From contig RHPI01002438.1 of the NCBI GenBank assembly GCA_009103225.1, positions 62,001 through 126,000 on the forward strand: a stretch of 64,000 nt of DNA, read 5' to 3'. The translations under genes were made by a program, and so were the position numbers. This DNA is from Chlorokybus atmophyticus. Its lineage: Eukaryota; Plantae; Mesostigma and Chlorokybus algae. The notes under the pieces are model-generated. The model did not search any database, was not told where the DNA came from, and saw only the letters and a list, made by a program, of their open reading frames with translations. This document shows, piece after piece, positions 39,592-57,300 of this stretch (its first letter is position 1; the number at the start of each line of letters is the position of its first letter).

Positions 39592-42500
39592 GTGGAATTT
39601 TAGCATATAGCTGGCATGTTAATGCATTTGGTTGCTTGCCCACATTGCCATACTGCGAGGGCACACGAGTTCTTGCCTAGATGTCTTGTTGCTGTCCTAC
39701 ATTGTTGCGATGGCTGGCGCATGTGGTTTGAGCACTACAACCGAAACATAAAGGACATCAACGCTCCATCCATGGTTAGGCCATGAGTGCTAGTGTATGC
39801 GGTCTGTCTGCCGGTTAAGAGGGAGTTGCCGTCCCTGATTGAATTGTATGAGGTCTCAGCATATAGCTAAACGGTACTTATGCCTTGTGCCTGCGCAGCG
39901 TTGCCAATGTTGGCGCCACGGCAATTGCGACAGAGTATGCCATGCGAATATGGGGTGAAGTGGGATTGGGCGCGGTTACGATTGCCATGACGGTAAGCGG
40001 CCATGGTGACTTTGTGAAGTGGTTGTGTTGTACTGCCAATGCAAAGGTTATTTATATGTAACTTTTTTGTAGGTGGTAACGGTGTTATTCACTGAGATCA
40101 CACCCAAAAGCATCGCTGTACACAATGCTATTCCAATAGCACGAGCAGTATTACAGCCCATCGCAGCACTTTCTGTAATATTGTATCCGGTTGGCCGTGC
40201 CTGTACATTGATATGCTCCGGAGTCTTAGCATTACTAGGGCTCGGGAACCATGCGTAAGTACATTTGGTACTCTTACACGCTCGCATGCTCCCACATCTC
40301 ATACTGCGGTGACACTCCAGCATCTCGTGTGTCTTGCAGTGAACCGTTTGTCACAGAAGATGAACTCAAGTTAATTATTAGCGGGGCGGAAAGTAGTGGC
40401 GCGATTGAAGAAGAAGAACAGGTATGCTCCCGTGGATAGCCAAGTTTTCTGATATACAGCGATGCTGAAACCGGTTTGGTTGGTTTTTGCAGGACATGAT
40501 TGAAAATGTGCTCGATCTCGAGGAGAAGCAAGTCAAGGAGATAATGACACCGTTGGTGGATGTTGTCGCGGTTGATGGGGGTTCCAAGTTGCTAGAGCTG
40601 CTTCGGTTGTGGCGAGAACATCAGTACTCAAGGTCTGGGAGTGTAGGGGGTCGTTAGTTGGGCTTGTTTGAGCCAGCACTGCTGACGATGCTGTGCGTCG
40701 CACAGGGTGCCTGTGTATGAGGGTCGGGTGGATAATGTGGTGGGCATTGCGTACACAATGGACATGTTGGACTACCTTGAAGAGGTACGCTGCAATGATG
40801 GTTAGCGCGTGTGCGAAAGTGCGCGTCCTGGATGGAGACATACTGCTGTGTGTGTATGTGTTAACTTACATGGTGTTGTGCAGCCCGAACTGCTTGAGCA
40901 CATCACAGTGTCAAAGGCCATGTCAAGAAATCCCGCATTCTTTGTGCCTGGTAAGTGCAGCCTTCTTCGGCATGGTTGACGTGGTTGTGTCCAAACGGGA
41001 GTCTGAACACCCTGCATCTGTCAGATTCCATGACGGTTTGGAATTTGCTGCGTGAGTTTCGCATTCGTAAGGTGCACATGGCAGTTGTGGTCAACGAGTA
41101 TGGCGGCACAGCTGGGGTAAGCAACAATTGGCTTGCAAAAAGGTTGTCAGCATTGCTGGCCTGTTGCATGCTCTGTACTGCAGCTGCTCAACCTGTTATG
41201 CCTGTGCTACCCAGATTGTGACACTTGAGGATGTAGTGGAAGAGATCGTTGGTGAAATCTATGACGAAACAGACACCAAGGTAGGCTTGGACCTAACAAC
41301 ATCAGCAAGTCGCATTGGCATTGTGCACGGTCAACGGTACTCCTCTTTATGCAGGAGGAGATTGCTCGCAAAACAGGGTCAATTGTCAGGAGAGAGGAAG
41401 GCATGTGGCAGATTGATGCACACATGTCAATGGAGGATGCTGCAGATGCTTTGGAGATTGAGTTTCCCGAGGGGGAGTACGAGACTATGGCGGGCTACAT
41501 CTTCCATACATTTGGGTACATCCCGAGGTCTGGTGAAAGCATTGTGGTGCTGTTGCCAAAACGCATAGAAGACAAGTTTGAGAGCGCCACGAAGCAGGCC
41601 TTGCAGATTCGCATGACCGTGGTTAATGGCACTGCTAGAAAGGTACAGCTGCAACTTGCACATTCTCTGCGTAACAATCGTTGCAAACAGCCTCTGCACG
41701 TTAGGTGCAAGCGTCATGCTGGCTCCATGCTTAGAGTGTGACTCTGCCTCAAGCTAATCACTGGGTGAACAGGTGCGGTCTGTGCTGCTAGAGGTCTTGG
41801 GCGTCTGCGAAGGTACTGGTTGTGAAGTAGACGTGAATGGATTAGCCCGGGCGGAGAAACTGGCAGATGGGCAGCCTCGCGGCTACTCCACGGACGTGGA
41901 TGATGAAGACAATGCTGTTTACGGCTTTGAAGAAGGTAGTCTTTAGTTGTTGCACAGGGGTTGTGCACTTTGTCGACCGGAGTCTGGCCTCAGTAGTGCT
42001 AATCGTGGGTTATACACAGACGGACGGACAGCAGATGTTGCCATGGCTTCCGAGATTATGCGAAACTCTATCTCGTTAGGTGAGTACGTGCTATGTGTGA
42101 TACAGCACTATCAGAGCGGTTTATCACAATGGGACTGATTTGTGAGTCGCATAACAGGAACACTAGATGCCAACTCCCCTGCCATGTATGTGCCTGAAAG
42201 AGCCCGCTCAGCGTCCCCAAGCACGTCAGGTGATGAGAGTCCATCATCAGGGAATGGGAGGTCGATCTCACCGCAATTGCTAGTAGGCAAGCCCATTGCA
42301 CGAGGTGCTGCCGCTGCACAGTGGGATGCGCTTGCTGAAGAGCGGCGCTCTGAAGAGGAGTATAGAAAAGAAAAACGGAGAGAAGGGTGAGCGGTCGACA
42401 GCGATGTTTCGCCTTGGAATCCACATTATGCAACTGGTGCATTTGTTGCTTGGCACATGCGCATGTCTCTGTGGTATGCACACACTCATAGGCCTCTTGT

Positions 42501-43022: not shown

Positions 43023-46000
43023 TTATGCATAGGACAACAGCTGCAAGCTGGTTGGTTGAGCGTTGTACAGGCATGTAGCGTCAGCAGATGCGAAGAGTTC
43101 CATGTCGAAGTCGTTGTAAGGTGCAGCTCCGTTGAATTGGTGCACTTCCACTGCAATCGTCTGTGGCCCATCAGCGCGAAGGAGGGTGCCAGCGACCTTG
43201 TATGATGAGAAGACGGTTGGAGTACGTGTCGCTATCGCTGGAGTGTTATAACCCACAGGTCCAGAGGGCATGTTGATCCGGAGTGCTTCCAGGCCATTGA
43301 CGTATATGATCTGGATGGCATCATGAAATCAGTGCGTGCTGCAAGTGCATGCACTGCTGTGTATTCATTGCTGGGGTGAATCTCATGCTTACCGCGCCGT
43401 CTTCAAACCGCGTGTTGATGGTGAGCGTGTGGTAGCATGCTGTTCTTGTCATGGTGAACGTTTTTCGGAAGTAGGCAGTCTTTGGGTGCTGGATGAGAGT
43501 CTGCGACGAGGTTGGCACCTTGCCGTAAAACCCAAGTGGTGAAGGGCCCGCCTTCCATGCGCTGTCGTCATACGTAGGCATCGTCCACAAGCCAGCAGGT
43601 GGGATGAGGTAGTCGTCACTGTACTTCCACACGCCATCTGTCTTAAACAGGCTCAGTGGTGCGGTTGTTGTCACGCAGCGTCGCGGGTCGCTGCATGCGC
43701 CGGTCACCGCCAGCGCCTTCAGGCTGGCTTCCAAGCCCATGTTGTTATACTGTGATCCCTTGTGCACCTCCACAGCCAGCCTGTTGACGCCGGTCTGCAC
43801 AGTAAAGTGTGCTCTTTAGCCATGCTGCTGCACACACACCATTTGACATTCGCATGTGCATTGTTCATACCTTGAGTGCGACGGAAGGAAATGTTGCATT
43901 CGCCATGGTGATGTTGGGAGTGTTGAAGGTGGGATTGTTGATCTGCGCCCATGTGGTGTACGAGATGGCAATGTCAGATGGCATGTTCCACCTCACCAGC
44001 TCCACTCCGTTGATGTACACCACAGCGCCTGACTGCTCGACACAGGAAGCAGGGGAATGGTCAGCAATGACAGTTTGTTCAGTTGCACTGAGGTGAGCGC
44101 ATATTTGTTCTGTTTGTTGCCAACAAACCTGCAGCAGCAGGGACAAGTCCAAAGAGGTGATTGCGGAGGCATCAGCAACGTTGAAGTCGTAAACAAAGTA
44201 GCCTGTCGGTGTGTACTGTTGGTTGTTGGCAGCTGACCGAATTAGTGGTGTGATCTGCGTGGCTGCGGGGTACACTGCGGGGACGCTGCAAATCGGGGCT
44301 ATCCCGCTCAACCATGTTGAGACATCGAAGCTGCAAACATATTGCACAAGTGTCAGGTGCGAGCCATAAGGGTTGACATATATTTGCTGCCAGCAGAGTT
44401 CCATATGCCACACACCTTGGAAGCTTCCATGTGGAGTCAGTATCGACATTGATCTGTGAGTACTTCCATGTGGCCTGGAGCGGTGTGAATGTCACAGGCT
44501 GTGTGGCTGCAACTTGTGCACATGAACCCTGCAATAGCAACATCGAGTTAGGACACAATAGAATGGTATGACATCACAGGTGGCTATTCACGACCAAATG
44601 CGAGGCAGGCACACGTACCTGGTAGCAAACAAAGCCAGAGGCGCAGTTGAGCTGGGGACTGCCGTTGCTCGATGGGTTGTCGATGTTTCCATCGCAGTCA
44701 TCGTCAATGCCGTTGCACACCTCCTCCTTTGCCACAACGCTGCATGGCCCGAACATCCCCCCCATGCATGTCTGCACACCAGTGCTGCATCCGGCCTTGC
44801 ACGTCTTGGTCAATGGAATGGTTTTGCCAGGGACATTGTCAACGTAGCCTGGTGCATGCAACAATTAGACCGAGTGCGCTATCTGGCAACCAGCATGACA
44901 CATTACTGTACCACATGTTGTGTCATCAAGTCCTCACCATCGAAGTCGTTGTCATAGCCATCGCAGGTCTCGATCAACCAGTCTTGCAGGTTGTTGATGA
45001 CGGGTGTGGGTGGCACTTTGTTGGCGTCCTTCACGTAGAAGAACACAACGGTCTTTGTAGAGGTAACCAGTGTGGGCGGCCTGACCATCAGTTTGGAGAT
45101 GCCTGTGTTGGGGTTTTCAGCTGGGTTTACGCTCAGAGCAAGTGGGGTGGGGTCCGTTGTCGCGGTCTCGAAGACTGCATTGCTTGGAGAGAGTATCTTT
45201 GCGACGAGCGTGACTGCAGGGGAGCCTTGCGTCAACAGGGCCGTCTTGCCATCGGTGGAGATGGTGACTGAGGCTTGCGTGTGGAACATTGACACAATGT
45301 CGAGCGGGGTGTTGGAAGTCACCTGCAAAGGTTGGCACACAGGTTTACCCAACTTGTTGAAGCGTTCAACTGAGCTGAAAGCAACAGGTGGGAGTGGTTG
45401 CGATGCATTACCTCATCTTGGATCAGCAGCCTGGGTGTGCTGAAGCCTACATCCTTGATCAGCGCAATGCCACGTCGCACTTTTGTCGCCAATGGGTAAG
45501 CATTGGTCAAGTCCATTACCACGTGCGAGCGGTCGGGCGTGGAGTAGATGGGGTTCAAGTTGGTTGTCACAGCCAGAGGCTGCAAGTAAGTTCCCAGGTG
45601 AGTCATTGAGCATTTGCATGTCAACGTTGTTGTGAACACTTCACAGACGATCATGTGTCTCATACCTGGCTGGCAAAGTAGAGTGGTGTCTGCTTGGTCG
45701 TGTTCATGGACATCGTGTTGTGCGACTCCGTGCGAGTGCGATAGAACCTGAAGCGGTTCTTGTTGAAGTACCCGGGGATCTGGTAGTTGTCGGTGCCCAT
45801 GTCAATGAGGAAGCGCTGGCCCATCACCTCATAGACAAATGTGCCCAAGTCCAGGTGCTGCGTCACACAAGCTACTTTCAGACAAGAAACCTTCTTGCTG
45901 CGCATGCGAACAGATCTTTATTTCATGCACACGTCTTGTGTAGGGGCTACTCACGTGATGGCCACCACCAGCGTTTGGCGTGGAGCCAGCCTTCATGCAG

Positions 46001-48379
46001 GTCCAGGCTGCCTGGGGGTCCACCCAGTCCGTCCTCAAGCACGACACGTCAATCTGATAACCCTGGAAGCGCTTGTCGGTCGGTGGCATGTTGACCGGGA
46101 GCACTCCTGCGATTGCACTCAAATTACACTGTGATCACTTCTGCACAGCCAAGGAGCACTCGTATGTGAGTGCATGTGCATGGGTATGCAGCTACGAGGC
46201 TTGCCTGTGTATGCACTTGGAGTTGCCCAGATGATTCGCTGTACGCCACCGGTTTCACCCAACGAAGCCTCCCAGGCAGAGAGGTAAGGATCATTCCACC
46301 GGCGCGAAATGTAGTAGCACAGCTGCAACAATCCCAGCAAGTAAGTCTCATGTATTCACACACGCACGCATGCAAGGTTGTTTGCAGCGATGTTGTTGGC
46401 TGCATGGTCCGCAGTGTGTACCTGTGCGGAGAGGGCAGTGGCTTCGGAATCAGCAAAGTTGTACTGGATGTTGCTGGGACCCATAATGTGGAAGCGGAAC
46501 ATGCACAGGTCACGCAGGTGCGGCTGCATCGCGAGGTTGTAATCGGTGCCCATCCCCGTCTCCATGGAGCTGAGGATGTAGGAGATGCTGTACCCCGTAA
46601 ACGACAGGTACGTCGGGCCCTCGAAGTGTCCTCCGCTCGGGGCGTACAATGCTAGGGCTCTTGGCAACTGCGGCAACGCTACGTCCAGAATCTGCACGCA
46701 AGTGTTGCGTTGAGTCGAGATCCACATATGGGTTCCCAACCACGCCATCGAGTTGACTTACTTGTCCGCAGAGCGTGGCATCGCGATCAGCGAAGCTGAT
46801 GGCGGCGAGGATGAAGCCGGCGATGCTGTTGACCCTGATGTTGGTCTCCACGTATGTAAGGCTGGCCAGATTGCTGTTGTTCAGACCCGGCAGGAACCCG
46901 TTGGTCTTTACAGCGTTCCACACGATGTCGCGCTCCGCCGGCGTCATCTTCGCGTACAGCCAGTCGTAGCCAATGGCTGCCGCCATCAGATACTGCGACA
47001 ATTCCAAGTACCCTGCCACATCAAGCAGTCATTGTCAACGTTGTTGTTGTAACTGTCGTGTCCCATGCGTGCACTCAGGCTGCATGTGTGCCGTTCCATG
47101 CCAGGTGCGTTCTAGGTGTATAACCGTGCAACAGTGGCAACACCAACCTGGGTCAACGTTCCCAGCAGTGTTCCACACGTTAGGCGTGAGGGAGGCGATG
47201 TAAAGGAGGTCATTCTTGGCGAAGGTGGTGCGGTTGGCGGCCTGGTCGAGGAGGGCCATGCCGGCCACGAGGGTGATGCGGTCGAGGAGCCCGCGGGAGC
47301 CCAGCGTGGTGGCGCTGTCCGGGTTGGTCATCGTCGCGTCGGCGGATTGCGCGGTGCTCTTGAAGAAGCGCGGCGCCAGCCCTGTTGCGGCGGCCACATT
47401 GGCCCGCACCTGAGTAACTATCGCCGGCGTCACCATCAGTCGCGGCCTCATTGTTGACTTCACCTTGCTCACTGCATTCGTAAAGTCGATCTGGCCCTGC
47501 ACAGCCCATTCACCCAAACGGTCGCGAGTGAGTTACAATCACAATGTGATCGGCAGCCGCCGTGCGCTTTAATCATCGTTGTTGTTACTGTTGTTGTGGT
47601 GTTTGTGGATGCTGTTCTGTGCTTCGCTGCGTGTTGTGTCTGTGTCCGGAAAGTGCCGCTTACCAGGCTCAGCGGTGTGGGAGGGGGAGGCGGGGGTGCA
47701 AAGCATGGTGCAGGAGTAGTCGGGATGAAGCACCGGTCCGCGACGGTGTAGTTCTTGTTGGCGGCGGGAGCATTCAGTGTCACCGTCGCGCCGCACTTGG
47801 TGGACACGCCGGCGCACATGTCCGACGCCCGGTAGGGCTTGACAGTACAGTTTGCAAGCACCTGTGCACGTGCTGAGTGTTGGACACACGCACATGCGCA
47901 CACACAGACACGCGCATCCACCCACCCACGCACATACGCACGCACGCACGCACACGGAACATCTCCGTCCCAACAAGTCTTACCTTGCCCTTGGCTGCTT
48001 CGGACTCCACCGACACCACGCCCGCACTCCACACGCCCGTGACATCCGTCTTGGGGTACCGTTGGACGGCAATGGAGCCTGCATTACAAGAATGTTAAAC
48101 AGCTACACAGCTTGACCAGTACTCCGCGTGCTTGTGCACTACACAGTTTAACTTGCTCACAACAGCACTGTACGCGCGCTCACCGTCATTGTACACGCAG
48201 GTGACAAGCATCGTGGCGTCCATCATTAGACGGTCCTGCGCGTTGCCGTACGCGCCGTTGTTGCAGGCGTCGCAGTACACGCGGCCGCTGAGCATGGGTG
48301 ACACGTACTGCGCCCGCGCCGACCCCGCCAGAGCCAAGAGCAACACTGAAGCCAGCGCAACCAATCGCATCGTTGCCAT
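43023..48379 (-). CDS. Secreted mosaic protein: signal peptide + Pollen Ole e1-like domain + Pro linker + heparinase II/III-like polysaccharide lyase + 2 MopE-like (ExCDGxDNDCDG) repeats + 2 bacterial-type beta-sandwich domains; about 15 exons
   Basis: MATMRLVALASVLLLALAGSARAQ; SGRVYCDAC; AAAIGYDWLY, GGHFEGPTYLSF, YNFADS, CLRTDW, HLDLGTFVY..GQRFLID.G.DNY, YRTRTESHNT; ETCDGYDNDFDG and EVCNGIDDDCDGNID; WKY...W....DDS.W..G..PLG..YFRKTF...DGAV.YVNG.E..R.NMP...AVEVHQ twice. Confidence 0.85.
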
Positions 48380-51300
48380 GGCTGCGGCTGCGCTCCAGCC
48401 CTTGAACACTGCAATAGACACAGAACTTTACTGTCTGCTGTGTTGTTCCATTAGAGGGATAGTATTACACCACAGTCTAGAGTACACAACAGGACAGGCT
48501 ATTATGCAATGCTTCTCATGGTGCGTGACGTATATTTGCGGTTACACTCGCTCTCACCTTGAGTGTGGCGGTATAACCAGTGTGTGCTTGCGTGGAAGGA
48601 AGGTTGCCAAAGTCACACACGCGTAGGATCAGCAGTGTAGTGGCCGCCCGCGATCAGCAAAGAAAGAATGGGTACAGTAGAATGGCCGAAGAATGCTAAT
48701 GTTTTTTGGGAAGAATGGTATTGAGTACACGAGAAAGAATAAAGAATGACGTATGCGGTACGCTATGTGGTATGGTACGCACGCGGTCGCGCAATGAATG
48801 TTATACAACCAAGCAAAGAATAATGGCAGCACAGGCCACCTGCTTGCAACAGCAGCAGCAGCCTGTGGCCTGCTATTGCTTCTCCTTGCCTCTACTCCCC
48901 CCAGTCCTGCCATCACTCCTACACAAGGTGCCTTATATACTGTCATGCTTTCTGTGCTAGGCCCCCGGCCTGGTCTGGCCTGGTCTGGTCTGGTCCAGCC
49001 CTAACCGCCTGGCCGGTACAGTCAAACAACAACAAAATCCACGCTTAGCTTAGCTCAGGCTAGCAAGCGGCTGTGAATCAGCCGCCTGTGCAGTGCTCCG
49101 CCGCCGCCGCCCTCTTGTCTCCAACGTTGACTTCTCCCTCCTTAAGCCACACTGTAACGGCCCCAACAAGCGACGAGATGAATCTTCATCGCGCAGTAAT
49201 TGATATGTGCAACACTTATGGTGTCACAACAAAGATTTCCTTAACGGGAGCCCCGTTACGGGGCCCAAAGTCGTTTTCTCGAGGAATATCATAACTCTCC
49301 GTTTCTGCGGGCGTTTCTACGGGTTAAGGTCTTCAACGCAATAACTCCCATCATTGCTGCGAGAACGAAAGAGTTGGAGAATTTTGCCAATGTTGTCAAA
49401 GAGGTCAAAAGTCCCCGTATGTCACTTATCTGGTCGCGACAACAGCGACCTCACGTGATCAATCAAGGTCTTGCTCACGTGAGGTGTTGTTGTTTACGTT
49501 TATGAGGTGAGTTTGGTACGGTTTGCCGCAATGCTAGCAGATGGACCGTGATCCTGCGGTCGCCAAGGGTCGCGCTAGCTTGACCATCAGGTCAACTTCT
49601 CGGTTCGCACTTCTGCTGGGATGCGCGCATGTGTGGTTACAGCAAGTCAATCACATTTTTGAGGGGGCGGAGTTAGCCAGGGTTTGACCGCGACCACGGT
49701 TAGTTACTTGGACGGCCGCTCGCGTGAGGAAGCCCAGGCCTCTGACATACAGGTTTGACGCCGCTGCCAACCTCTCCTGACAAATCACTTGAGCTGAAGT
49801 TGGCTTTATTGCAGGCCGTGGCTTTGTCAAGTCAATGCTGAGCAAGGTGTTCGACGTGGTGACGCCGGCATGATACGTACTACTTGTACGACGTGCGTGA
49901 GACATGTCAGTATGCTCTTGGCGGGGCAATCCTTCTTGGAGTTCAAAAGCATCATATGCTCTCCTTGGAGATCAAGCGCGCCACTGTGCCATAAGCGCGA
50001 CTCCATCACATCAAGCTAATTACGCCACGGGCATCACACGGCGTGATGCAAGGCGTGATTCACGCCTTGCATCATGCCCGTGCCGCTCTGTCAATGATAC
50101 ATTGCTCACACACATGCTTGCGTTTTTCGGCTGTTGACCATGTTTGATGACGCAGTAACTATAGCGTGTAATCAATTAGCGTTAAAGGGTAGAGTGGATT
50201 AGTTAGAACGAGGGTGAGTAGTGGCGGCATGTCTTTGGGGTATGGGACCTGCCCCGACCTCGTACCGCCAAAAACGCGGCCGTTTTAACCACTAATTGTG
50301 CCGCAATTGCACCAAATCCCTAGCAGTTTTTGGTCGCCGTTGGTAGGCGGTTGCCGCTGAGATATTTTTCAGCATCTTTTAAGCATCTTTGCAATGATTG
50401 GTTATTTCGCTGCCTTTTTGAGCAACTGGCTGTTGTCACCGTTGCGATCCCATTTGATCAATCTCATACGTGAGCAAATGGTGGCCTAACGATGCAATTT
50501 TTCGTTTAGTTGAATCTTAACGTTAAGGTAATTCAGGTTAGCATTATGTTGATGGTCGTAACCTCGGCATTATTTACGTAGTATCGCAGCACGTACCGTG
50601 GCGTGAACGTTACGTTGATTATTAAGTTTTGAAACACTTAACAGCATTTGCTAATATCGCACCATGTTGCACCATATCGCCGCATATGTTATCATATCGC
50701 AACATTTTGCTACACATCAGAGATATTGTGCATGTGGATTTGCACCTTTGCACGCCCTCATTGCTGGACTCAAAACTCAAAACTCAAAAACATCCCCAAG
50801 TTATGGCACTTGACCATGGTACTTAATGTATTATCTTAATACATGTGGGACATGTTCAGATCATATAAGCCATGTGAAACCATATGCCGCTAAATGTGCA
50901 CTATATTCTCCTCATGTTTTGCAATATATATTATATGTATATACATTATATATAATATATATATATAATGTGTAAAAGATCACATGTAACATATATATTA
51001 TGCATATACAATTGTATATATAAAGTGTATAATGCTATGTATCATTTTATGATATATATGTATATCTTTTATTTATATATAATGTAATGTATGTATGATA
51101 TAAAATTACCCATATATAAGTGCGTATGTATCATATAAATTTTGCACTTATGATACATATATATATTTTATTGCTATAAAATACAATGCATGAATATATA
51201 TATTATATGTAGTCATAATTGCATATAGTTATCAGGAACATCATAAATAAAGTATATATAGTTCGCATATATTTTGAGCAGTTGCATGACATGGGGATGA

Positions 51301-54318: not shown

Positions 54319-57300
54319 CTACGCTACACGTGTGACACACAACCCAACATTGTGCCACACCCTCTCAGAACATCCCTTCGCCTGCGCACGTGCGAAAAAC
54401 TGTCTCGACACGGCGTTCTGCTGCACGCTTTGAGGGAATGAGAAGGAGTCCGGTGATGCAGTGGATATTCTCACGGTCCCGTCCGCGCCGAACACGACAA
54501 ACACCGTCACGGCTTTGTTCTTCGATCGCACGAAGTAGCGCGCACCCGTCCCAATGGACCCCTTGAAGGAGTAGATCTGGCTGATGCATTGGGATTTTCT
54601 CCTTTTGTTGATCAGGACCTCCATGATGTCAAGCTCGCCGCAACCGCCGCTGCTGCCCATTCCACGGCAGTTGCAACCGTACTGAGACGACCGTGGGACG
54701 TGTTGGGGGAGACAGCCAACTTAGAGCCATGCACATTTACACAGTGCGCTTGCATACACACTTACGCACGCATGCGCAGCTGTGCTAGTACACACGTCCA
54801 CGAGGACACGGGCAGGTACATGCATCCGCACGCATGCACACATGGTCCCGTGCGCACGCCTGCACATGTGCACAGTTTGAACTGGTAGGCATGCACGCAC
54901 ACATGCGTGGCAACCTTTCCTTGCTGGCTTGCAAAAAGGAAGCAAATGGCTAACACTTGCATTATGTTTCTCGTGCACGGCACCGTCATCTCACCTGTGC
55001 GTTGAGGAGCCACACTGCAGGGGTGTCGGTGCCGCCAGCCTCGGGCATCCTTAGCCTGAGCACGAACATCTTCTCCCCCTTGGCGTTGCCCGACCACCCT
55101 CGCTGCCCCACCCCCCGGAAGAACCCGCAGGAGTTGCCCTTGCACGCCTGCCCCGTCATCGCATTCACCTTAAAAAGGGTGTTTCATGTTTAGTTGTTGT
55201 TGTGGTGGGTGGGTGGGTGGGTGGGTGGGTGGGTGGGTGCGGGTGTGTCTGTGTGTGTGTGTGTCACAAGGAGCTGAATTTGGGTCAAGGAGCACTCACC
55301 TCAACGTCTGCTGCAAGAGAACCCGAGAAGCGTGTTGATGATTTCGCAGACATCTTCCCATCGGCTGTACCCCATGATTGGCTCATCCCACCGCACACGC
55401 TGTACACGCCCGAGCCACCCCCACCCTTGTTGTTCAGAATCGCCATGTTGGATTGACTGCACAAAGTTGGGGTCACATTTGGACTAACTGTTCACGCTAA
55501 TGCGTGCATGCATAGGGTATAGGTATCACACGGATTGACGTTCGGGGACCATGCATGGTCCTTCCACGGACCCCGCGGGCCATACATGGTCCGTCCCCGC
55601 GGACCACGAGTGTCTGGTCCGCGAGGGACGGACCGTCCATGGTCCTTTTGGGGCCCCAACATCTGGCGCGCAGTCGCGCACCACATATGGTCCGTGCCGC
55701 ACCTTGTATAGTGCGGCACGGATCAGTACTCTACGCTGGTTCCTGGATGCGGACCAGGAGTGGGCCCGGCAGCCGCGCACCGTACATGGTCCGTGCACAT
55801 TGCTGGTCCATGCCGCACCATGTATGGGGCGGCATGGACCAGCAATGTTGCTGATTGGCGGCCCTGCAGGGCGCGCTACACGTGTACCATGACTGAAGTA
55901 TCGTTACTGCATGTACGAGTACATAGGTACATTGTGTGTATCATCATTTAATAAATGACAGGCCGCACCGACTGTCGCCGCTTACCATAAAGTGGACAGT
56001 CGCAAATGGTCGGCGGCTGTCAATGTACATTGACAGCCGGCTGTCCATGTACATTTTAACTTGACAGCCGCCGACCAGTTGCGGCTGTCCACTTGTGGCC
56101 TATATATGTATAAATGGATATGTGTATACATATAAATATATGTGTATATATACACATATATATATATATATATATGTGTATACATGCATATGTATATATG
56201 TTGATAAATATACGTGTGTGTGTGCATGTAGGAATAGGCTTAAGGTATACAAGCAAAAATTGTTGACGTATTGCGGCCGCAATTTGCAGCCGTGCAATTA
56301 CTTCATAACCATCATTTCATGTACATACATTGTTGTAAGTATATTGATGCGCGTACACATGTGCATTAGACCTTTCATATGCAAGATTATATACATCTCA
56401 AATAATGTATAAAAATATGATTGTACAAAGTGTTATGATTATTATACAATTACATAGTCTAAAATATTAATTATATCAAATTTACATCCATGCGTTGCGC
56501 GTGTTAATTACAGTTTATATAGTTCACTGGTTATTACATTATCATAATGTTCACAACCGTTAACATCATACCATGAATACATATGTTGATGCTGTTCACA
56601 TGTTGCATTGCTAGGCGTTGTTTATGGTATGTTTGGTTTTGATAATTTGTACGAAACGAAAGCGCAAGCAATGTCAGATGTTATGACTTGTAGCCTTACT
56701 TGTATAACCTCATAAATGGCCTATAAAAGCCTCATGCGACCACAAAATCATTGACAGCCCGTTAAGGTACACTGGCTGCATTGACAGTCGCAATTTGGCT
56801 ACTATCACTAAGCATTGTCACAATGACAGCCTCTAACAAGTCTACAAATTGTACTGGCGTATTGACGACCGCCGAGTTCGCGGCTACCTATATGTAGTTT
56901 ACCACCGTCCATGTAATTGGTACAGCCTATAAATGCTACAATTGCAGGGGCTCAGCCTATGGGCCTATCAAAGTGACACACAATCTCCGACTGTCCATCG
57001 GCAATTACTGCCGCCGGCCGACAGTCGCCAAGCGGCTGTCGGCGCATGCAGTAAACTACATGATATAGGTTGCCGTGCGACCCTACCGGTACGTGCACTT
57101 GTAGCTTAGTGGTTAGGGCGTCGTCTTCGATATGCTAAAGGTACTGGGTTCGAATCCGGCCGATGCGGTGTGTTCTTGACTAATCATTCCACTAACTCCG
57201 CGGAGCTGGCCGCGGCCTCTTGCGCCGCAGGTTGGGCGTGGCCGGTGCCGCCGGCAAAGATGTCTCAACTTTTACTGCAGTTGCACTAATGTTTACATTG

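Follow-up and report, generated by a model that had tools for sequence, protein, structure and literature searches.

An intron-rich gene of the streptophyte alga Chlorokybus atmophyticus predicted to encode a secreted PL35-type polysaccharide lyase with an Ole e 1-like module and tandem jelly-roll domains

A 64,000-nucleotide stretch of the genome of the streptophyte alga Chlorokybus atmophyticus (assembly GCA_009103225.1, contig RHPI01002438.1, positions 62,001 to 126,000 of the forward strand; this whole stretch is called the window here, and all positions follow its numbering) carries an intact functional nuclear gene on its minus strand, which runs from an ATG at 48379-48377 to a TAA at 43025-43023 and has an unbroken open reading frame (ORF) under purifying selection. 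The gene is predicted to encode a secreted modular protein in which a polysaccharide lyase core of the PL35 (heparinase II/III-like) type is preceded by a signal peptide, an Ole e 1-like module and a proline-rich hinge, and followed by Cys/Asp repeats and two jelly-roll domains. An earlier note on this DNA, made from the letters and their ORFs, had placed an intron-rich gene for a secreted mosaic protein at 43023-48379; all the elements that it listed are present on the minus strand, its coordinates are exact, and the modules that it named are found together in one 17-exon in-frame ORF.

The exon chain was built from ORF lists and three-frame translations, and splice sites were then read from the sequence. 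The 17 exons join in frame to 3771 nt (1256 codons) with no internal stop and with continuous phase, as checked with a local script. All 16 introns are short (70-167 nt) with (C)AG acceptors throughout; 15 are of the GT-AG type, and the remaining donor, that of exon 7, is either a GC at 46204 or an in-frame GT at 46216, which if used makes the exon shorter by 4 codons. On the minus strand, exon 1 (48379-48184, starting with the ATG) is followed by exons 2 (48078-47984), 3 (47861-47664), 4 (47496-47148), 5 (47012-46762), 6 (46691-46422), 7 (46322-46205 with the GC donor or 46322-46217 with the GT donor), 8 (46106-45955), 9 (45857-45666), 10 (45579-45412), 11 (45322-44938), the Cys-rich exon 12 (44848-44619), and exons 13 (44528-44416), 14 (44330-44129), 15 (44032-43871), 16 (43794-43393) and 17 (43310-43023, with the TAA at 43023-43025). 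Searches and fold models used single exons, or the public C. atmophyticus paralogue Chrsp6S07482 (P0140 below) as a stand-in for the spliced protein, and the joined conceptual coding sequence was used solely for frame continuity and substitution classes. Residues 22-1212 of P0140 align along 48319-43068 (tblastn), and the same search found no second copy or tandem paralogue of the lyase gene within the 64-kb window. A chance arrangement is excluded because the homology is collinear, the frame continuous and the excess of synonymous differences 23:2. Bacterial contamination was also considered and is ruled out by the 16 spliceosomal introns, the eukaryotic neighbours and the occurrence of paralogues in a eukaryotic proteome.

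The predicted protein begins with a signal peptide of 23 residues (MATMRLVALASVLLLALAGSARA; 48311..48379 with the start codon, minus strand as for all features of the gene), which was read directly from the sequence without a predictor and carries an A-R-A cleavage motif, with cleavage before Q (A-R-A|Q). The Ole e 1-like module that follows (47709..48310) is encoded in exons 1-3, spans introns 1 and 2 and contains GRVYCDAC and eight Cys in total. Exon 1 by itself scores 15.6-16.9 bits against Pfam PF01190, under the cut-off of 23, the module being split over three exons; exons 1-3 tile onto the Ole e 1 region at the N-termini of P0140 and of another paralogue, P0092, with all eight Cys aligned, and the homologous region of P0140 passes the cut-off (28.7 bits vs 23). 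The Cys framework with its CxxC opening is present, as GRVYCDAC and seven further Cys positions common to P0140 and P0092. A poor structural model of the P0140 region (predicted local distance difference test, pLDDT, 48) gave as its top three Foldseek matches Lig v 1 (two chains) and Pla l 1, at E 2.5e-3 to 2.5e-2 and template modelling (TM) scores of 0.38-0.44. The CD.C Ole e 1-like domain of the earlier note is thus borne out by the Cys framework and by the paralogue's Pfam match, although exon 1 alone stays sub-threshold. Compared with plant Ole e 1/PAC-domain wall proteins (PF01190; Lig v 1 6YOA, Pla l 1 4Z8W), the module shares the GxVYCDxC start, the Cys pattern, a TDxxGxW motif, secretion and a Pro-rich neighbour, but it has eight Cys rather than six, is sub-threshold on the gene's own exons and is fused to an enzyme; no paper on an Ole e 1-lyase fusion was found in the searchable literature. 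The Pro-rich hinge (PCFAPPPPPPTPLSL, with PPPPPP; 47664..47708) was read from the sequence and leads to exon 4. Membership of exons 1-3 and the remaining exons in one gene is favoured because the frames are continuous, the same fusion occurs in two paralogue models and a separate signal peptide is missing from exon 4.

Exons 4-11 (44972..47496) encode the lyase core, assigned from a family hidden Markov model (HMM) of 75 single-domain relatives, PDB matches and Pfam. Exons 4-6 and 8-11 are collinear with positions 40-621 of this HMM; exon 7 gave no significant match to it. When exons 5, 6 and 9 were searched against the PDB, the sole matches were the PL35 chains 9o3q, 8khv and 8khw, in collinear order, and the N-terminal toroid region aligns to PL35 chains from residue 13 and to the HMM from position 40. 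In the ORF that contains exon 9 the Pfam model Hepar_II_III_C scores 27.5 bits, above its cut-off of 24, and in the Chlorokybus paralogues it scores 26.5-49.6 bits; DSE-like_N (DUF4962) matched none of the single exons and, at E <= 0.01, none of the full-length paralogues. A profile of the four public Chlorokybus paralogues matched 8KHV at E 4.8e-68, 9O3Q at 2.3e-56 and 8KHW at 9.4e-55, and the next family, PL15 (3A0O), at 1.8e-6; similarity to PL35 therefore extends over the full length and is stronger than to other polysaccharide lyase families. The core is, by these comparisons, of the PL35 type, with a predicted (alpha/alpha) toroid and beta-sheet domain.

By alignment, the active site of these enzymes is intact. 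The charge-neutralising Asn (46840..46842, in VETNIR) aligns to Asn187 and the catalytic Tyr (46608..46610, in EGPTY; HMM consensus EGpgYW) to Tyr241 of GAGase VII in the 8khw alignment. The stretch 45720..45960 holds an H-H-H-L-D motif, split by intron 8, together with further Mn ligands, according to the 9o3q alignment and the family HMM: the first His of HHHLD (45958-45960) would be the catalytic one, fitting the HxHxD pattern of His401 of GAGase II, and the putative Mn ligands are a His (45855-45857) and the Asp (45849-45851) of the same motif, the Asp of LIDMG (45801-45803) and the His of ESHNT (45720-45722). HHH-L-D, LIDMG and ESHNT align to HQHLD, EDLG and SHNT of 9O3Q, and the ligand spacing agrees with His403, Asp405, Asp421 and His457 of GAGase II. 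In PL35 GAGases the roles of Asn, Tyr and His and of the His, Asp, Asp and His Mn ligands were assigned by inactivating mutagenesis (PMC12088678), and all seven of the residues so validated are conserved here. The full heparinase II/III-like lyase core reported in the earlier note is in this way refined to a PL35-type core that keeps its triad and all four Mn ligands. As a separate observation, all Chlorokybus paralogues have Ile or Val in place of the Trp after the neutraliser Asn of the N-W-N family consensus (46837-46842), a clade-specific change in the active-site region.

Relative to the known PL35 glycosaminoglycan (GAG) lyases (GAGases II and VII, 8KHV and 8KHW; chondroitinase 9O3Q), the core is collinear over its full length and shares the Asn/Tyr/His triad and the His-Asp-Asp-His Mn2+ site, so that the expected chemistry would be beta-elimination at uronic acids. 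The known enzymes are, however, single-domain bacterial proteins of about 600 residues. The core described here is about 25-35% identical to them, has the N-I/V of its clade where the family has N-W at the neutraliser Asn, and belongs to a eukaryotic gene with many introns, whose product surrounds it with an Ole e 1-like module, Cys/Asp repeats and two jelly-roll domains. Proton abstraction by Tyr and His is common to the epimerases and lyases of this fold, and the N-domain of the superfamily now bears the Pfam name 'DSE-like_N'. The core might on these grounds be a uronyl C5-epimerase like animal dermatan sulfate epimerase, editing glucuronic/iduronic (GlcA/IdoA) or mannuronic/guluronic (ManA/GulA) type residues without cutting the chain. 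This we regard as very unlikely: similarity to characterised PL35 lyases (E 5e-68) is far stronger than to anything else in the PDB, the neutraliser Asn is preceded by Thr and not by the His of dual-function or alginate-active relatives, and the protein is predicted to be secreted with binding-type modules, as extracellular lyases are, while eukaryotic polymer-level epimerases act in the Golgi.

Downstream of the core lie two Cys/Asp repeats, ETCDGYDNDFDG and EVCNGIDDDCDG. The first, ETCDGYDNDFD(G) (44939..44971), has its Gly codon split by intron 11 and gave no Pfam match; the second (EVCNGIDDDCDGNIDN; 44676..44723) lies inside exon 12 and scores 21.7 bits (E 2.4e-4) against PF11617 (Cu-binding_MopE), under the cut-off of 27. 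Both of the MopE (PF11617) repeats claimed in the earlier note are present, but with a Pfam score below threshold, and they are therefore named here only MopE-like Cys/Asp repeats. Exons 13-17 tile twice onto a unit of about 185 residues. The first jelly-roll domain (43705..44495; exons 13, 14, 15 and the start of exon 16) tiles onto P0140 residues 835-1022, and the second (43026..43656; the rest of exon 16 and exon 17) onto P0140 residues 1035-1225 and onto the first domain; both share the motifs WKY, YF..F, VYxNG, NMP and AVEVH. By sequence these domains gave no significant match in Pfam, NCBIfam or the PDB, and they are named by fold comparison alone. A model of the first unit of P0140, with this gene's exons in the alignment (pLDDT 60, predicted TM score 0.66), superposes with VIA-align on a GH2 N-terminal sugar-binding domain over 141 residues (Z 10.6, root-mean-square deviation 4.0), matches GH2 N-domains in Foldseek at E 1.3e-5, and resembles the accessory domain of bacterial CotH, LTD, metallophosphoesterase, lysyl-oxidase and GH71 proteins at TM 0.63-0.64. 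In the model, a GH2 N-terminal-type fold is thus shared over most of the domain, which suggests jelly rolls like the GH2 N-terminal (galactose-binding-like) type and makes them putative sugar-binding domains. The resemblance to CotH, LTD and metallophosphoesterase proteins agrees with the beta-sandwich of bacterial CotH/phosphoesterase type that had been proposed. The likeness to these bacterial accessory domains (CotH, LTD, metallophosphoesterase, GH71) and to the GH2 N-domain is one of fold and not of sequence family; here, moreover, the domain is a tandem duplicate placed C-terminal to a lyase in a eukaryote, and its binding is putative.

Four public RNA runs of one organism (X1-X4) hold parts of the locus. 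Sense splicing is seen at a single junction, 44619|44528, in run X2, where removal of intron 12 (44529-44618, minus strand; GT..AG, seen as CT..AC on the plus strand; uncut joint 44527->44618) joins the exons in frame as ...FVCYQ|GSCAQ...; intron 12 is the sole sense intron whose removal is seen in RNA. The contigs of X3, from a second study, are collinear with the genome across sense introns. The RNA check suggested in the earlier note is therefore answered in part, by an in-frame junction at intron 12, but no junction joins the Ole e 1 exons to those of the lyase. A spliced antisense RNA (43599..48552, plus strand) was recognised from joints in RNA contigs of X1, X2 and X4, three runs of one study, with its dinucleotides checked. 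It overlaps the whole lyase gene and has seven GT..AG introns (43599-43678, 45063-45136, 45598-45681, 45855-45971, 46608-46771, 47008-47104 and 48119-48200, plus strand), none of which coincides with a sense intron; one of them is also used in X2, whose strain is 95-99% identical to the window. The rebuilt part of this RNA (1870 nt) has a longest ORF of 151 aa and is probably non-coding. A coding gene on the plus strand was rejected, since this ORF is without homology and the substitutions are silent in the minus frame. A deeply covered RNA contig of 2761 nt in X4 matches the window over only 30 nt at 43174-43203 before the two sequences part; it probably represents the mRNA of a paralogue with higher expression.

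Between the window and the strain of X2, 23 of 25 exonic differences are synonymous in the minus frame, at third positions, and two are non-synonymous; the gene is therefore under purifying selection, which constitutes strong sequence-based evidence for a working protein-coding gene. The locus might instead be a silent or decaying relic that now mainly serves the antisense non-coding RNA, as could be argued from antisense junctions that outnumber sense ones by seven to one and from the absence of the protein from the public protein library. Such decay is highly improbable in view of 1256 codons over 17 exons with no stop or frameshift, the 23:2 synonymous excess, the retention of all catalytic and metal residues and the one sense junction that is present.

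The gene belongs to a family within Chlorokybus. An exhaustive search of exon 6 against 1.84 billion representative proteins returned 454 proteins at E <= 0.001, the best of them 40-44% identical. The gene's own product is absent from this library, which holds four C. atmophyticus paralogues; the public gene set may lack the gene altogether or may have a model on the wrong (antisense) strand in its place. Exon-wise blastp singled out the same species only, with four proteins (EukProt/JGI Chlat1) whose summed exon scores reach 388-480 bits against at most 281 for any other match. P0140 (1225 aa) agrees with the gene in its whole architecture, P0092 (749 aa) has the Ole e 1 and lyase parts, and P0022 and P0034 are lyase only, as modelled. 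Of the 17 exons, 14 align collinearly with P0140, at 31-56% identity per exon; exons 1, 3 and 12 fell under the blastp cut-off. It has the same module order, from the signal peptide through the second jelly-roll domain, but is a paralogue and not the same gene: its per-exon identity is low, it has one degenerate Cys/Asp repeat where there are two here, and in the last domain one intron appears to have been kept as coding sequence in its model. By these sequence comparisons the gene described here is a further, fuller member of the family. The searchable literature yielded no description of Chrsp6S07482 and no paper that deals with heparinase-like or PL35 genes, whether of Chlorokybus or of streptophytes. 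The claim of an undescribed architecture accordingly holds for searchable papers, but not for public gene models, as P0140 has the same architecture.

The taxonomic range of the lyase core was judged from the exon 6 search and from 30 source look-ups among 150 listed matches. Among these 30 the four Chlorokybus proteins are the only eukaryotes and the other 26 are bacterial or metagenomic, and no other alga or plant turned up among the 454 library matches, although the library includes EukProt proteomes. A tree of 94 cores groups the four paralogues in a single clade (SH-like approximate likelihood ratio test, SH-aLRT, 100; stem 0.78) inside bacterial and metagenomic sequences, and three near neighbours of the clade lie on compact intron-free contigs. 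The phylogenetic check proposed earlier thus gives one clade among bacterial and metagenomic sequences, though with a polytomous backbone that singles out neither donor nor date. Across 185,579 prokaryotic species genomes, the best relatives are 31-34% identical over the whole core and belong to Chthonomonadales, Tepidisphaeraceae, Bryobacteraceae and other Acidobacteriota, Fibrobacteria and Chloroflexota; relatives in these soil phyla at this level of identity favour an old bacterial transfer of the core. The match to PL35, the position of the clade and these relatives agree with the bacterial-type core of the earlier note. Its horizontally acquired bacterial 'cassette', by contrast, finds no support: Ole e 1, Cys/Asp (MopE-like) or jelly-roll (beta-sandwich) modules stand beside the lyase in 0/51 bacterial loci of the genome scan, 0/4 neighbour loci and 0/146 other library matches, so that a joint transfer of the lyase with its accessory modules is not supported. 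A metagenomic neighbour of the Chlorokybus clade, P0060, lies directly after two sulfatase genes and near an adenylylsulfate (APS) kinase gene (L001 2659-8830), which fits a sulphated-polysaccharide target for that branch.

An origin of the core outside bacteria, either as an old eukaryotic gene lost nearly everywhere or by way of another eukaryote such as a fungus, would be compatible with the long stem, with an identity of only 31-34% to any bacterium, with the reported presence of PL35 genes in fungal genomes and with a source traced for only 30 of the 150 listed matches. It nevertheless appears quite unlikely, as 0/26 of the other traced matches are eukaryotic, the Chlorokybus clade is nested within sequences on compact bacterial contigs, and other algae and plants are missing from the library matches. 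Horizontal transfer (HGT) of carbohydrate-active enzymes (CAZymes) that degrade walls has been proposed for several other families in streptophytes (PL1, PL4, GH28 and others; PMC9915684), and the bacterial transfer favoured here would resemble those cases in involving a degradative wall enzyme of apparent bacterial origin. It would differ in that PL35 is not in that list and is so far confined to Chlorokybus, and in that it would match an unusual sulphated GlcA-rich matrix and not homogalacturonan.

A secreted modular polysaccharide lyase that acts on the alga's own matrix and whose core was acquired by old bacterial HGT is the joint explanation that best fits the evidence, and one in which we place a fair degree of confidence, well short of certainty. 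Substrate and enzymatic activity are both inferred, at the level of sequence. The secreted core would cut chains at uronic acid residues that are 4-linked, through a Mn-assisted beta-elimination that leaves 4,5-unsaturated termini, while the flanking modules would hold the enzyme on the extracellular matrix. Its likeliest substrate would be the anionic, sulphated sheath of the alga itself, a 'pseudo-pectin' containing GlcA and galacturonic acid (GalA), and its action may serve matrix loosening or turnover, for example in packet growth or zoospore release. The core may have come from a soil bacterium by old horizontal transfer, with intron gain, duplication and fusion to the other modules following in the alga. 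Chlorokybus 'pectin' is sulphated, has both GlcA and GalA, including beta-GlcA-(1->4)-L-galactose (L-Gal), and resists every land-plant wall hydrolase tried (PMC10953000).

The same enzyme could alternatively be directed at acidic polysaccharides of foreign origin, for example those of bacterial capsules or the exopolymers of biofilms within soil films, for defence, niche clearing or carbon scavenging. Its closest relatives are catabolic soil-bacterial enzymes, one of them adjoining sulfatases, the family is expanded in a subaerial alga that lives among bacteria, and no evidence links the lyase to the alga's own wall. A foreign target is nonetheless unlikely, because an Ole e 1-like module and a Pro hinge are what proteins residing in plant walls typically have, the alga produces a uronic-acid polymer of its own that is sulphated and uncut by known plant hydrolases (PMC10953000), and a photoautotroph has little need to scavenge.

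Several points weigh against the favoured explanation of an own-matrix lyase of bacterial origin. The enzyme activity is deduced from sequence, the same catalytic residues occur in dermatan-sulfate-type epimerases of the superfamily, and the mechanism presupposes 4-substituted uronic acids in the algal polymer, as beta-elimination requires. Because the product is missing from the protein library there is no independent gene model, and for the sense mRNA there is one short junction. The spliced antisense transcript accounts for most of the RNA contigs over the locus, and no RNA connects exons 1-3, which encode the Ole e 1 part, with those of the lyase. The model of the jelly-roll, made from the paralogue's domain, has middling confidence. 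As to origin, the tree has a polytomous backbone and a long Chlorokybus stem of 0.78, and fungal PL35 sequences, which exist, are not among the 94 cores of the tree.

Two further features were noted in the window. A CorC_HlyC transporter-associated domain at 41349-41741 (plus strand; Pfam 54.9 bits) marks the end of a CBS/CorC-type gene on the plus strand, just upstream of the point where the antisense RNA is first seen. An ORF at 54319-54660 (minus strand; Pfam 46.9 bits) has the C-terminal domain of the yeast wall protein YJL171C/Tos1 and is a second wall-related gene in the window, of a type best known from fungi.

Taken further, the findings could describe a soil-bacterial PL35 turned into an expanded family that remodels the alga's own matrix, anchored by Ole e 1 and bacterial-type sugar-binding domains and cutting sulphated GlcA-rich 'pseudo-pectin', at a locus maybe switched by a conserved spliced antisense RNA; this fuller picture is a tentative one, and somewhat doubtful as a whole. 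The enzyme family PL35 and one public gene model with the same architecture were already known, and what is added here is the exact exon model, the selection test, the C-terminal fold, the soil-bacterial relatives and the antisense RNA. Chlorokybus stands at the base of the lineage leading to land plants, and we know of no enzyme that cuts its anionic matrix polymer, which is sulphated and rich in GlcA and L-Gal. A PL35 family with intact catalytic residues offers a clonable candidate for doing so, and the enzyme could serve as a tool for dissecting the structure of the polymer. If the proposal is true, it would point to a system for loosening the wall that is distinct from the pectate lyases and polygalacturonases found in land plants. 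A further CAZy family would then join the bacterial wall-enzyme genes acquired by streptophytes, and the case would show a route by which such a gene may be domesticated: by gaining introns, by duplicating and by becoming fused to binding domains and a module of plant walls.

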